This document shows, piece by piece, positions 30,190 to 34,951 of a stretch of 64,000 nt of DNA. Origin of the DNA: Podarcis erhardii (lineage: Eukaryota); the NCBI GenBank assembly GCA_964252035.1, contig OZ176201.1; one strand, given 5' to 3'. A program made the position numbers and the translations under genes. The stretch's first letter is position 1; every line of letters begins with the position of its first letter. The notes beneath the pieces were generated by a model. That model ran no database searches. It worked only from the letters and a program-made list of their open reading frames with translations, and was not told the DNA's origin.

Positions 30190-30273
30190 GCTTTCTTCGA
30201 TAGAGATTATATTACTACTCACCCAGGAGATGCAGAAAAAATCACGCAGCTGAAAGAGCTGATGCATGAACAG
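30190..30273 (+). CDS. DOCK3: DOCK3 exon AFFDRDYITTHPGDAEKITQLKELMHEQ
   Basis: ccccag|GCT, CAG|gtatcc; 84 nt. Confidence 0.95.
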
Positions 30274-30885
30274 GTATCCCCAGACTTTTAAAGATGAAGG
30301 AATATTATATTAATAACATTTTATTTCCTCAACAATATATCCAGTAACAAAGATTCCATAGGCTTAGGCTACAATGCTTACACTACTTAATTTGGGAATA
30401 AACCTCACTGAATTCAATAGGACTTCTCAGTAGACATGACTACTATTGCACTCTAATTCAGTGTTTAAGATGAAGAAGTTTACATTGTGCTCAATGTAAA
30501 TTTTTCTTCTAAGCCTTTTTTCCAGGACTTAACATTTCACTGACCTAAAATGAAAAGAGAAACCTAAGTTAGTCTACAGGTAGATTCTGAATACATCCGT
30601 TTCCATGTAAAATATTTAAAAGTGAAAATTCTGGTGATTTCAGTCATTTTTCCTTCCTTCACTCCATTAAAGTATTTTATCCAAACTAGGGAAAATTTTG
30701 AAAATTTTCATGATCAGTGTCTTGTCTACATTGCTCCCACAATCTTAATTTATGTAAAAGCTTAACATGGTAGTGGCCTTTTGTAATTATTTTCACTGGC
30801 GGAATACTAGTTCCAAAGCGGTCGGTGTGATGATTAGAACTGGATGCCTACCCTAGGTGTTAATTCAAGGAAAATAAATCAGTCT

Positions 30886-31500
30886 GGGACTTCCGGGTTA
30901 GCGCCATCGCCTAATGGCGGATTCCCTCCGAGCTCCGGAGGGAATCAGCTCAGTAGGAGACGGGTCCTGGCGACGCGGGGACCCTCAGAAACCACAGGCG
31001 CTGAAGCCTGTGGACCTGGTGACTCGGCGGGCACCATCTGTGTCCTCCCCGACCCGAGAAGGAGCCTTTTTAAAGGCTTCGGAACGGGGGACGGGGAGAG
31101 GCGCGGTGCTGAGAGTCGACTGCTACTCCTACTGAGGGAAGCCGCATGCCATGGTCGGAGAGCGCTGACTTCTTCCTTTGAACATTTGGACCCAAAGTAA
31201 AAGCCCGTGAGTAATACGGAAATTGGATCTAGAAAAGAAAGATTTTTTTGTCTGAAAGATTTTTTTGTCTGAGAAGAGCACACCCACCTAGTCTGATACC
31301 CTGGGGGTATAATCACTTTCCCCCCCTTTCCTGTAATTATTTCTTCTCTGTGTAAGTTAAGCTTTACTACAGAGGAGCTTTACTACAGAACAGAAACGGA
31401 TTTAACAATTACAGTGTTTTTAAAAAGAAACTGGAACAAGCAGGAAGAGGATCAGATTTCCTCTTAGCTTAGCGTTTCCTGCTTTTAGCAGTAGGCAGAG
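30886..31500 (+). mobile_element. Probable L1 5' UTR fragment (CpG-rich), end approximate
   Basis: Starts gggacttccgggttagcgccatcgcctaatggcgg, resembling recalled lizard L1 5' UTRs; hairpins and short internal duplications; no ORF1/ORF2 recognised after it. Confidence 0.45.
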
Positions 31501-32155
31501 ACAACTTCCATGTGGATGTATCCTGACTCGCAAATAGAAACACCCTTTAGGTGAGTGCCAATGGTACCCTCTAGCTCAGTGTTTCCCAACCTTTTTTGGG
31601 CAAAGGCACACTTGTTTCATGAAAAAAATCTCGAGGCACACCACCATTAGAAAATGTTTAAAAAATTAACTCTGTGCCTATATTGACTATATATAAAGTA
31701 ACTCTCTTTAATAGGAATCAAATAAACACAAATAAAGTATTTTATAATTACTTTATTATGAAATAGTAAGTAAACAGAAATATGAAAAATTATAAAATAC
31801 TTTATTCAGTGAACCTGTGAGGGCCCGCCCTTTGCAGCAGCCGATTGGCTGCCGCCGTGGGCAGTGAATATTAATGATGTATCATTTTTGTGCTTCATGC
31901 TGTGGCCACAGACATGTGATCTGATGGTGAATTTGGGGTGACCCAATGCAAAAATCCTGAGAATCCCTGTGGATCCATGCTTTTAAACCACATTTTAAGT
32001 GGGGAGGGAAGGAAAAACACAGAACGGACAAGGAGCACGAGAGGGGTGTGCAGAGAAGCAGCTGGCTAAGAATGCAGGAGAGGGATTTAACGGGGAGGGA
32101 GGAAAGGAAGGCAAAAGTTTTCCCTCACCTACTCACCCAAGCCAGCCAGCTCGCA

Positions 32156-32190
<35 letters not shown>

Positions 32191-32290
32191 CTGCCTGCTT
32201 GCCTGGAGGGGAGGGGCTTTCCCTGCTCTTTGTTCCGTTTGAGCAAGCACAGCAAGGAAACAGAGGCGGGTGGGCAGTAAGACCCTGAGG

Positions 32291-32353
32291 CAAGTGCGGC
32301 TTGTGCTTGCTCAGCAGCTTCTTCACGGTGCTCCGCGGAACGGTGTTCTTCAT
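32291..32353 (-). pseudogene. CENPW: Captured CENPW-like first-exon fragment MKNTVPRSTVKKLLSKHKPHL
   Basis: Aligns by eye to the recalled chicken CENP-W N-terminus MRRTVPRGTLRKIIKKHKPHL; similarity stops abruptly after 21 codons; good Kozak context (gccgccgggATGa). Confidence 0.72.
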
Positions 32354-32431
32354 CCCGGCGGCGGCGGCTCCCTCTCTTTCCTCTCAAGCAGAGCGGCCTT
32401 CCTGCTCCAGCCGCGCCTGCGCCTGAGGAGT

Positions 32432-32505
32432 TTCGAATCTGCCGCCGCGCGCAGGGTGACGTCACGGCCGCCGCCGGGCCAATCCGCCTGCTCGGCCCCG
32501 CCTCC
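32432..32505 (-). promoter_or_regulatory. Cell-cycle-type promoter module: GC box, CCAAT, CRE, CDE/CHR
   Basis: On the minus strand GGCGG (32446-32442), 4-nt spacer, TTCGAA (32437-32432); GTGACGTCAC 32456-32465; CCAAT 32479-32483; CCCCGCC about 32496-32502; CpG-island composition. Confidence 0.7.
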
Positions 32506-32759
32506 CTTCTTCTCGCCTCCCTCACGAGAGGAAGCGCCTCCCTCGCGCACGGCGGATGCAGCCTGAGCAGAGTCCCCTCTCGCTTAGAGCAGTGTTTCCC
32601 AAGCGGCACACGAGGCAACGTGTCGCGGCACACTAGTGTGCCGCGGAACACCGGTTGGGAAACACTGCTCTAGCTAGCAGTCAGATACTTGGGGAAATTT
32701 TTAACTCATTATCGCTCACCAGAGCCTAAGTTAGTTCTCATGTATGCTTGTACACAAAG

Positions 32760-32760
32760 T

Positions 32761-32811
<51 letters not shown>
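32760..32811. repeat. (TTTC)n microsatellite; others include (TA)n 29318-29352, (CT)n 32159-32186, (CTT)n 14120-14171
   Basis: Direct inspection. Confidence 0.95.
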
Positions 32812-33156
32812 CACTAGTTACAGTGTATGTGAAAATCACACAGCACTGAAAGTGCCTGGATCCTTGTGGTCTACAAAATTGGTCTGGCAAAGTTTGGACA
32901 CCTTACCCTGTTTGAGAAAAGAGTCCATAGTGCTAGATGGTGTTATGTGAAATGTTATGATTAATTCTATACTGCCTTTTGGCTAAAAAAAAAATGCCCC
33001 CATGGTAGATCACGAAGGATAATAAAAAGATAATTAAAGGAAGGGGGGGGGATCCAACTAAGAAAAATGTAAAACAAAATTGTAAGTATTGATGAAGCTG
33101 TTCTCCTGATTTTGAAAAACTTCATTGATATCTGCCAGTTCTCTATTGGTCTAGCT

Positions 33157-33635: not shown

Positions 33636-33752
33636 GTACATATATTAGGAGTGGGTCTTGCAGTACATGAGAAGTTTGTACATCCAGAGATGCGCCCTCT
33701 TCATAAGAAACTAATTGACCAGTTCCAGATGATGCGATCCAGTTTGTACCAT
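33636..33752 (+). CDS. DOCK3: DOCK3 exon VHILGVGLAVHEKFVHPEMRPLHKKLIDQFQMMRSSLYH (end of DHR2)
   Basis: aatag|GTA, CAT|gtaagt; 117 nt. Confidence 0.96.
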
Positions 33753-34951
33753 GTAAGTAGATAAACACTTTTCTTTGTTTGTTTCTTTCTCTTTTTTTAC
33801 AGTTCACAGCAGTATTTTGAATTCTTCCATTATGGCATAGACATGTGCACTGGAAAATGCTGAATGAGTACAAAATGAATTCTTCAGCAAAAATAAATTA
33901 GATATCCAGAAAAATATGAGGAAATGAACATCTGGATTTTTCATTTGTCTAGGCATTGCTCACATCATTTGAATCACATATGATCTTTTAAAATGGGTAC
34001 AAAAAAACTACACATTGCTTGAAATGCTATGATTAGGGATCTTTTAATCTGAGGATGCAATTTGAAAATAAAGCCTCAAGGAAAATTTGCTTGAAGAAGG
34101 TTATTTTATATTGGAAATTGCTACAGGGGGAAAGGATAAAAGCCCCTCTTCCCCTGTACTAGTTTTTCATCTTCAAATTGCAATCTCAGCAACTGTATTT
34201 TGGGGTTTTTTACTCCCTTAAAAGAATAACAGCAGAGTACATAATGTATAGTTCTGCCTTCAGTTGCTTGCTTAAAATAGGATATAAATAAATGTGTGCT
34301 TTTAAGCGTTACTTAAGGGCAGAGTACACAGTGAAAGGAGAAGTAAATAATGTAGTGTTAGAAATCCATTTTGTATAAAAGCCTGCATCAAAGCTAGACA
34401 TGTGTACTTCACATCTTTCTGATTTGGGAACCATTACCATCAATCTGTATATTGATGGTTCATTATTGATGATGACAAAAGTATTAGCGATAACGATACA
34501 TAGAAAAAGTCTCATAGATTGCATTTGCTAAGATATGAGTGAGGCTTATGGCATACAACTCCTTTCCTCCTCCCTTTGCACAAGCCAGCAACAGATCAGA
34601 AAAATCTTCAGTTAGCTATCTTTTCCCATTTCATCCAGAGTGGAACCAACCAGGATATTAAGCCATGGGCTACACTTGCACATTATGCTAAATCGTTGCT
34701 TAGTAGTACTATGTGTGTGAGCAGGAAGGAACCTGAGTGAAGACTCAGAATTGTATGCTCCCCTCTCCTCTTGTGTGGCCAGGAGAGGAACTTTGCTAAT
34801 TTTACAGAATGTCAGCTTTCACAGAACTGTGGTTTAAAACAAATTTCTGGCCAGCTTCTAAGCAAGCGTACTTCATACCATGGATTATGAAGCTGCTTTG
34901 AAACAAGCTAATCAGAGCTTGTTTTAAACCACAGTCTCTGGTTCATACAAA

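Follow-up and report, generated by a model that had tools for sequence, protein, structure and literature searches.

A probable Pack-hAT transposon carrying a CENPW promoter and first-exon fragment in the wall lizard Podarcis erhardii

Recent activity of DNA transposons is considered rare in amniotes. The Pack-MULEs of rice and other plants were reportedly described by Jiang et al. in 2004 and are also summarised in PMC8277862. For animals, Tan et al. reported 370 Pack-TIRs, transposons with terminal inverted repeats (TIRs) that carry host sequence, in 100 genomes, 208 of them of the hAT type (2021, PMC8277862). Multicopy cases numbered four of the 370, a frog accounting for three and an alligator for the fourth; the authors give copy counts of three and five and note that multicopy Pack-TIRs favour GC-rich cargo; the survey pipeline may miss cases in which the parental copy is linked to a transposable element (TE), and the main text of the paper makes no mention of lizards (PMC8277862). 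Here we describe a 1091-bp composite hAT element at positions 31577-32667 of a 64-kb stretch of Podarcis erhardii DNA (contig OZ176201.1; the whole stretch is referred to as the window). The element lies in an intron of a DOCK-family gene and contains DNA from another host gene, CENPW. Its intact TIRs and its target site duplication (TSD) surround non-TE host sequence with a parental copy elsewhere, the arrangement by which Pack-TIRs are recognized, and it is very probably a non-autonomous Pack-hAT whose 300-bp cargo extends from the CENPW promoter through 21 codons.

Structure and transposition of the element

The 5' TIR (31577-31591, plus strand) has the 15-bp sequence CAGTGTTTCCCAACC, beginning with CAGTG, and the 3' TIR (32653-32667, minus strand) is its exact reverse complement. 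Outside them lie the two copies of the TSD, CTCTAGCT, at 31569-31576 on the left and at 32668-32675 on the right, an 8-bp perfect match. The 1091-bp unit originally predicted, bounded by perfect TIRs of 15 bp and a TSD of 8 bp, is confirmed, each feature having been located exactly.

That the unit moved as one piece, as was also proposed, is confirmed by exact empty sites in two other lizards. Contigs of four public lizard sequencing runs (three of them DNA runs; the organisms are referred to by code letters) were placed on positions 31300-32950. Position 31568 is followed immediately by 32668 in a 5860-bp contig from organism F and again in a 980-bp contig from organism G. Both contigs skip 1099 bases, with 8 letters that fit on either side, such that each retains a single CTCTAGCT. 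The composite has transposed as one unit, generating the 8-bp CTCTAGCT duplication, in one Podarcis lineage. The flank of organism F differs from the window by less than 1%, yet the insertion is absent. Organism G is P. muralis-like, with P. muralis-specific variants in its CENPW promoter; its sole CENPW contig is of the native type (depth 26.7, compared to approximately 50 in the flanks), and no hAT-CENPW composite is found among its contigs over 31300-32950.

The 8-bp TSD, the short TIRs and the insertion as a discrete unit with an exact empty site are all characteristic of the hAT superfamily, whose TIRs are approximately 10-25 bp in length and begin (C/T)A(A/G)NG. Near its ends, the element has five copies of the motif GGCACAC or of its complement: at 31605 and 31635 in the subterminal part of the 5' end, and at 32605, 32627 and 32636 (GGCACAC/GTGTGCC) in the 3' end. 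These copies resemble the subterminal repeats typical of hAT elements. There is no transposase open reading frame (ORF) inside 31577-32667.

A feature absent from the original prediction is a third copy of the 5' TIR at 32590-32604 (plus strand), which has one mismatch and directly adjoins the captured DNA. When the TIR pattern is searched with up to two mismatches, there are three matches in the 64-kb window, compared to 0.14 expected. The presence of this inner copy makes 32590-32667 a self-contained 78-bp unit resembling a miniature inverted-repeat transposable element (MITE), which forms the 3' end of the composite. Both the TSD CTCTAGCT and the 8-mer at the inner junction, CTCTAAGC, have TA at positions 4-5 (two sites only); an nnnTAnnn target preference is known from the Buster/Charlie-like hAT group.

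From its left end to the cargo, the element consists of three segments with differing abundance. The first, 31577-31649 (plus strand), is a common hAT 5' end: its summed contig depth is thousands of times single-copy in all three DNA runs, and many of the contigs that share it diverge after 31647-31649. The second, 31650-31815, is an AT-rich backbone segment (GC content 0.16-0.36) that is repeated in these lizard genomes. The third, 31816-32289, is a very high-copy repeat block unrelated to CENPW, with a (CT)n run at approximately 32158-32186; it has no match in the native CENPW loci compared (see below), and its summed depth reaches approximately 3e6 in every species examined. Summed depth is not equivalent to copy number, and the copy estimate given below uses single-contig depths only; taken at face value, the summed depths over 31816-32292 would equal tens of thousands of copies per species. 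The block seems to be internally repetitive, as past 32292 its generic copies resemble 32070-32085. The rest of the window has no second copy of 31816-32292, and neither do 82 kb of related loci. Similarly, TIR and sequence searches recover no further copies of the family in the window or in the four CENPW loci fetched. Rfam searches of 31400-32800 give chance-level matches only, and a scan for bacterial-type promoters and terminators, a method irrelevant to a eukaryotic promoter, finds nothing. A (TTTC)n microsatellite is located at 32762-32810, approximately 90 bp beyond the right end of the element; together with the (CT)n run of the backbone, it interrupted contigs over this stretch. The 64-kb window contains 200 N.

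The captured CENPW fragment, its promoter and its copy number

CENP-W is the histone-fold partner of CENP-T. The captured CENPW fragment (32290-32589, minus strand) comprises upstream promoter, 5' untranslated region (UTR) and the first 64 nt of the coding sequence. The block had been singled out as resembling a CpG island, and accordingly it has a GC content of 0.68 and a CpG observed/expected ratio of 0.99 (compared to 0.09 in the right flank). Native CENPW loci were compared from P. muralis (L001), P. lilfordi (L002), P. raffonei (L003) and Lacerta agilis (L004). The cargo has 96.2% identity to the P. muralis locus over 290 bp, 96.0% to that of P. lilfordi over 303 bp, 97.0% to that of P. 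raffonei over 298 bp, and 86.3% to that of L. agilis. The aligned region begins approximately 236 bp ahead of the CENPW start codon and ends at nucleotide 64 of the coding sequence. The proposal that the block derives from the CENPW gene, which a failure to match that locus would have refuted, is thus upheld at three Podarcis loci.

The coding part (32290-32353, minus strand) contains the CENPW start codon plus 21 codons and 1 nt and is identical to the native Podarcis coding sequence. The minus-strand ORF that starts at this ATG (32353) is 74 amino acids in length; it begins MKNTVPRSTVKKLLSKHKPHL and then continues into unrelated sequence. Over residues 1-21 it has 100% identity to Podarcis CENP-W (P. 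muralis in the protein search), and the only PDB matches of its first 26 residues are chicken CENP-W chains (E ~1e-4), which also shows that the chicken N-terminus cited in the original prediction was right. At the point where the element diverges, native CENPW reads on in frame (…HL RMRAN…), so the breakpoint lies inside exon 1 and not at a splice site. The prediction was thus accurate in that the cargo is the 5' end of CENPW, but needs correction as to its extent: the fragment is 300 bp in length, not approximately 295 bp, and stops within exon 1 instead of at its end. Pfam searches with the 74-residue ORF and the 26-residue peptide give only a sub-threshold match to CENP-W (PF15510, E 0.12), because the peptide is so short. 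An exhaustive protein search with the 74-residue ORF identifies no chimeric proteins; one weak match (P0029) is a repetitive, junk-like ORF that aligns to the part unrelated to CENPW. Judged from its predicted translation, the element ORF is not a CENP-W protein: it has residues 1-21 only and lacks the histone fold of approximately 76 residues (PF15510).

No hAT TIR or end is present in the four native CENPW loci within 10 kb of the gene (3 kb for L. agilis). The absence of hAT TIRs from the native loci, together with a promoter core that is unchanged as far out as Lacerta, shows that the transfer was from host gene to transposon. The cargo lies away from the CENPW locus, since DOCK-family exons surround the insertion. 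Only three substitutions (32424, 32517 and 32518) are private to the captured copy, all other differences being shared with some native lineage; the capture therefore looks young, approximately 1% or less from its source. The same count led us to drop the concern that the cargo might predate the host lineage. We also considered whether 32577-32589 might be 13 bp of filler. This is ruled out, as these bases are native CENPW upstream DNA in P. lilfordi, P. raffonei and L. agilis; P. muralis lacks the equivalent bases due to a 25-bp deletion.

A contig of native CENPW mRNA from organism G matches 32290-32418 and ends there, placing the transcription start at or just upstream of 32418. The CENPW 5' UTR (32354-32418, minus strand) is accordingly at least 65 nt in length in this RNA contig, and the cargo includes the transcription start. 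The core promoter, approximately 170 bp (32419-32589, minus strand), contains a CCAAT box (32479-32483), a cAMP response element (CRE), TGACGTCA (32457-32464), and the motif GGCGG-4 nt-TTCGAA (32432-32446), all on the minus strand. The stretch from the CRE to TTCGAA is invariant in all five aligned sequences (the element and the four native loci). GGCGG-4 nt-TTCGAA fits the consensus of a CDE/CHR cell-cycle element and is a putative one. In the native P. muralis promoter, the CCAAT box is lost (ATTAG in place of ATTGG), and that stretch is absent from L. agilis. Should the carried promoter be active, dividing cells would be expected to make short RNAs from it that are antisense to the DOCK gene.

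Run X1 (organism A) is the best match to the window, with three contigs that show zero differences from it over the cargo and both junctions. The contig that spans the backbone/CENPW junction (32257-32340) has a depth of 1949, that inside the cargo (32342-32464) a depth of 2069, and that spanning the CENPW/inner-TIR junction (32466-32651) a depth of 2052. The unique right flank in the same run has a depth of 76.7, such that the composite is present at approximately 26 times single-copy depth, and no variant reaches 10% anywhere across the cargo. These values suggest a young dispersed family of approximately 25 near-identical copies in the lineage of organisms A and B, a figure obtained from contig depth and not from individual copies. 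The guess that the element might belong to a dispersed family is in this way supported, the same hAT-CENPW junctions being the ones that are amplified. Across 24 runs (organisms F and G are outside this set), the share of sampled words from the junction stretch 32230-32650 that is present is 0.90-0.95 in A and B, 0.70-0.75 in D and E, 0.57-0.63 in C and 0.40 in J, where shares up to approximately 0.6 can be explained by the native gene plus unrelated hAT ends.

Two side observations concern related DNA in the organisms with empty sites. In organism F, the upstream promoter of CENPW (32436-32573) forms a 138-bp contig with a depth of 520, compared to 88-130 in the flanks and 158 for the contig of the native 5' UTR and coding sequence; this organism seems to contain a few extra copies of the upstream promoter alone. 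In organism G, 22 contigs share the hAT 5' end to 31649 and then continue into a different GC-rich sequence that contains TGACGTCA. This continuation has the appearance of a different promoter-like cargo carried by the same family of transposons in a second species.

Junctions, proposed origin and rival explanations

The two edges of the cargo differ in character. At the left edge, generic backbone copies run to 32292 and CENPW homology starts at 32290, leaving a 3-bp overlap with the microhomology GCA. At the right edge, native homology in P. lilfordi, P. raffonei and L. agilis extends exactly to the inner TIR at 32590, and in the orientation of CENPW the 8 bp that adjoin this TIR are CTCTAAGC, which, as in the true TSD, have TA at positions 4-5. 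The corresponding native site is disturbed in two species: it lies within the 25-bp deletion in P. muralis (L001:9740-9800), and 2 bp are missing at its edge in P. raffonei (L003:9740-9800).

An origin from a MITE upstream of CENPW is preferred because a complete TIR end beside a target-like 8-mer resembles a real hAT insertion junction. We infer the following steps. In the source lineage, a short hAT MITE would have inserted at CTCTAAGC, a position approximately 237 bp ahead of the CENPW start codon. Subsequently, either gap repair after a hAT excision or bypass of an element end would have passed the inner TIR of the MITE and entered the CENPW promoter and exon 1; in the gap-repair variant synthesis would be templated on the MITE, while in the bypass variant the transposase would skip the inner end. 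After 300 bp, a switch via the 3-bp microhomology (GCA) may have led into the backbone of a longer element. The product would have a TIR at each outer end plus a fossil one inside, and it may have been amplified by the transposase of the family. The inner TIR suggests that the parental CENPW locus of the source lineage once had a TIR element. Such a fossil beside the cargo is a rare sequence-level clue to the origin of a capture, a question that is unsettled even for plant Pack-MULEs.

Several points weigh against this account and against the identification of the element as a multicopy Pack-hAT. None of the four native CENPW loci examined carries a MITE at the proposed site, and a 3-bp microhomology is weak when taken alone. 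The assignment to the hAT superfamily is based on the ends and the TSD only. The copy number is derived from the assembler word depth of short contigs in one run, and that run, X1, is possibly from the same sample as the assembly of the window.

The main rival accepts the capture but makes the inner TIR a late arrival: a 78-bp MITE would have entered a longer CENPW cargo at CTCTAAGC, after which the old 5' TIR paired with the 3' TIR of the MITE, shortening the element. The target-like 8-mer beside the inner TIR is compatible with such an insertion, as is the finding that none of the four native CENPW loci (0/4) carries the MITE at that site. No longer precursor is seen, however, and the X1 contig over the inner-TIR junction is as deep as that inside the cargo (2052 and 2069), so essentially all copies share the junction. 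We regard late insertion with alternative end use as possible, but on the unlikely side.

The FoSTeST model, put forward for multicopy animal Pack-TIRs (Tan et al. 2021), would make a hAT insertion beside CENPW unnecessary. In its favour, the composite is multicopy, the parent locus is without a TE in four species and one junction has microhomology; the model has also been described for comparable cases (PMC8277862). It does not predict that the cargo should end exactly at a full TIR terminus with an adjoining target-like 8-mer (TA at positions 4-5), and because this abutment is unpredicted FoSTeST fits less well and is a doubtful explanation here.

A third alternative concerns the copy number. 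The high depth might reflect local tandem or segmental amplification of one insertion, or a depth artefact of short GC-rich contigs, in which case the element would be essentially single-copy, as most animal Pack-TIRs are. Contig depth is the sole type of data available for this point, with the attendant caution against reading depth as copy number, and the 64-kb window and 82 kb of related loci contain no second copy. Against this, three independent contigs agree (approximately 2000, compared to 77 in the flank), and the equally GC-rich native contig in organism G is at or below single-copy depth (26.7, compared to approximately 50). An essentially single-copy element is thus quite improbable.

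The last alternative, that the CENPW likeness is fortuitous, is ordinary internal hAT sequence or reflects a CENPW promoter donated by the transposon, found no support (the sub-threshold Pfam score, E 0.12, reflects only the shortness of the peptide) and is refuted by the native-locus alignments and contig data, there being 96-97% nucleotide identity over 300 bp at the native loci of three species, no such block in the hAT family of the P. muralis-like genome, and a native promoter conserved in L. agilis without hAT ends.

Taken beyond this one element, the reading of a Pack-hAT formed by capture from CENPW can be extended to a speculative generalization, to which we give little credence at present: a hAT family that is active now or was so recently in one wall-lizard lineage might systematically capture CpG-island promoters with first exons, CENPW being one example, by inserting near promoters and then undergoing read-through repair or end bypass. 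Such a family could spread dozens of working cell-cycle promoters that give rise to antisense or chimeric transcripts in other genes. If this is true, a promoter-capturing hAT family of lizards would be the amniote counterpart of the plant Pack-MULEs.

The host locus and relation to known systems

The host gene is a member of the DOCK-A/B family on the plus strand, in which DHR-2 exons were identified by motif searches and PDB comparisons. An exon at approximately 24.7 kb corresponds to DOCK5 residues 1349-1385 (E 8e-6 in PDB), further DOCK-A/B DHR-2 exons are found at approximately 25.8, 27.1 and 28.9 kb, and the DHR-2 exon upstream of the element (30190-30273, plus strand) matches DOCK2 DHR-2 residues 358-382/431 (3b13_A, E 0.009). 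Downstream, an exon-like ORF at about 33636-33755 (plus strand) has a translation that reads VHILGVGLAVHEKFVHPEMRPLHKKLIDQFQMMR...; a PDB search with the exon at 33636-33761 gives no significant match, and the ORF at 33636-33755 is a putative DOCK exon by its likeness to DOCK3. The host paralogue is presumably DOCK3, whose sequence it fits. The positions of the flanking exons place the element, in antisense orientation, in an intron close to the C-terminal limit of the DHR-2 coding sequence; the location originally proposed, within an intron of that region and antisense, therefore stands, with a DOCK-A/B exon upstream and the putative exon downstream, both on the plus strand. The same intron has a second GC- and CpG-rich block at 30880-31180, approximately 400 bp upstream of the element (GC content 0.63, CpG observed/expected 0.82), with no hAT TIRs nearby. 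Pfam searches of ten long ORFs from the window, including both strands of the 30.9-31.2 kb block, identify no families.

The element shares with Pack-MULEs the capture and amplification of host gene fragments by TIR transposons, with a bias towards GC-rich 5' ends, and Pack-MULEs are often located within or close to other genes and give rise to chimeric transcripts. They differ in that Pack-MULEs are plant elements of the Mutator superfamily, with long TIRs, TSDs of 9-10 bp and numbers in the thousands per genome, whereas the lizard element is hAT-type, has 15-bp TIRs and an 8-bp TSD, and resides in an amniote. The native CENP-W gene is its other point of reference: it supplies 21 residues and the upstream regulatory DNA, and the element ORF departs from it after residue 21.

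With approximately 25 near-identical copies by depth, presence or absence that varies by species, and a complete core promoter together with a start codon, the family offers a natural experiment on the effects of scattering a cell-cycle promoter across the genome of a vertebrate. It is also a candidate marker of ongoing hAT activity in Podarcis, a genus heavily used in population genetics.

A likeness confined to the TIR exists with insect hAT2_NA MITEs (Zhang et al. 2013, PMC3845634). Their TIR is C(A/G)GTGTTTCCCAAC; that of the Manduca sexta family is identical to the lizard TIR over 14 nt, and those of the Bombyx and Rhodnius families have one difference from it. As in the lizard element, the insect MITEs have 8-bp TSDs with a TA preference at TSD positions 4-5, but no gene capture has been reported for them. 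From sequence comparison, the match could reflect a shared hAT clade or horizontal transfer, and we treat it as a lead only.

Among animal Pack-TIRs (PMC8277862), Ssk-FB4 of Drosophila melanogaster is similar in being a young multicopy family; it is polymorphic, and it originated by template switching followed by transposition. Ssk-FB4 is a Foldback element that captured a whole coding gene, for which there is protein evidence, whereas the lizard element carries 21 codons and no histone fold. The closest known counterpart is Pack-hAT-N8_XT of Xenopus tropicalis, which captured 291 bp of the CAPSL 5' UTR and is present in three copies (PMC8277862). Both are non-autonomous hAT elements with intact ends, 8-bp TSDs and approximately 290-300 bp of GC-rich cargo from the 5' part of a gene; the frog family has been amplified by transposition to distant sites, as the depth data suggest for the lizard element. 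The lizard cargo adds a core promoter, a transcription start and a start codon, and the fossil inner TIR that it adjoins suggests a parental locus linked to a TE. At approximately 25 copies by depth, the lizard element is also roughly five to eight times more numerous than the frog families of three and five copies, and it outnumbers every vertebrate case in that survey (PMC8277862). It is not a new kind of system, but an unusually prolific member of the known class of animal Pack-TIRs.

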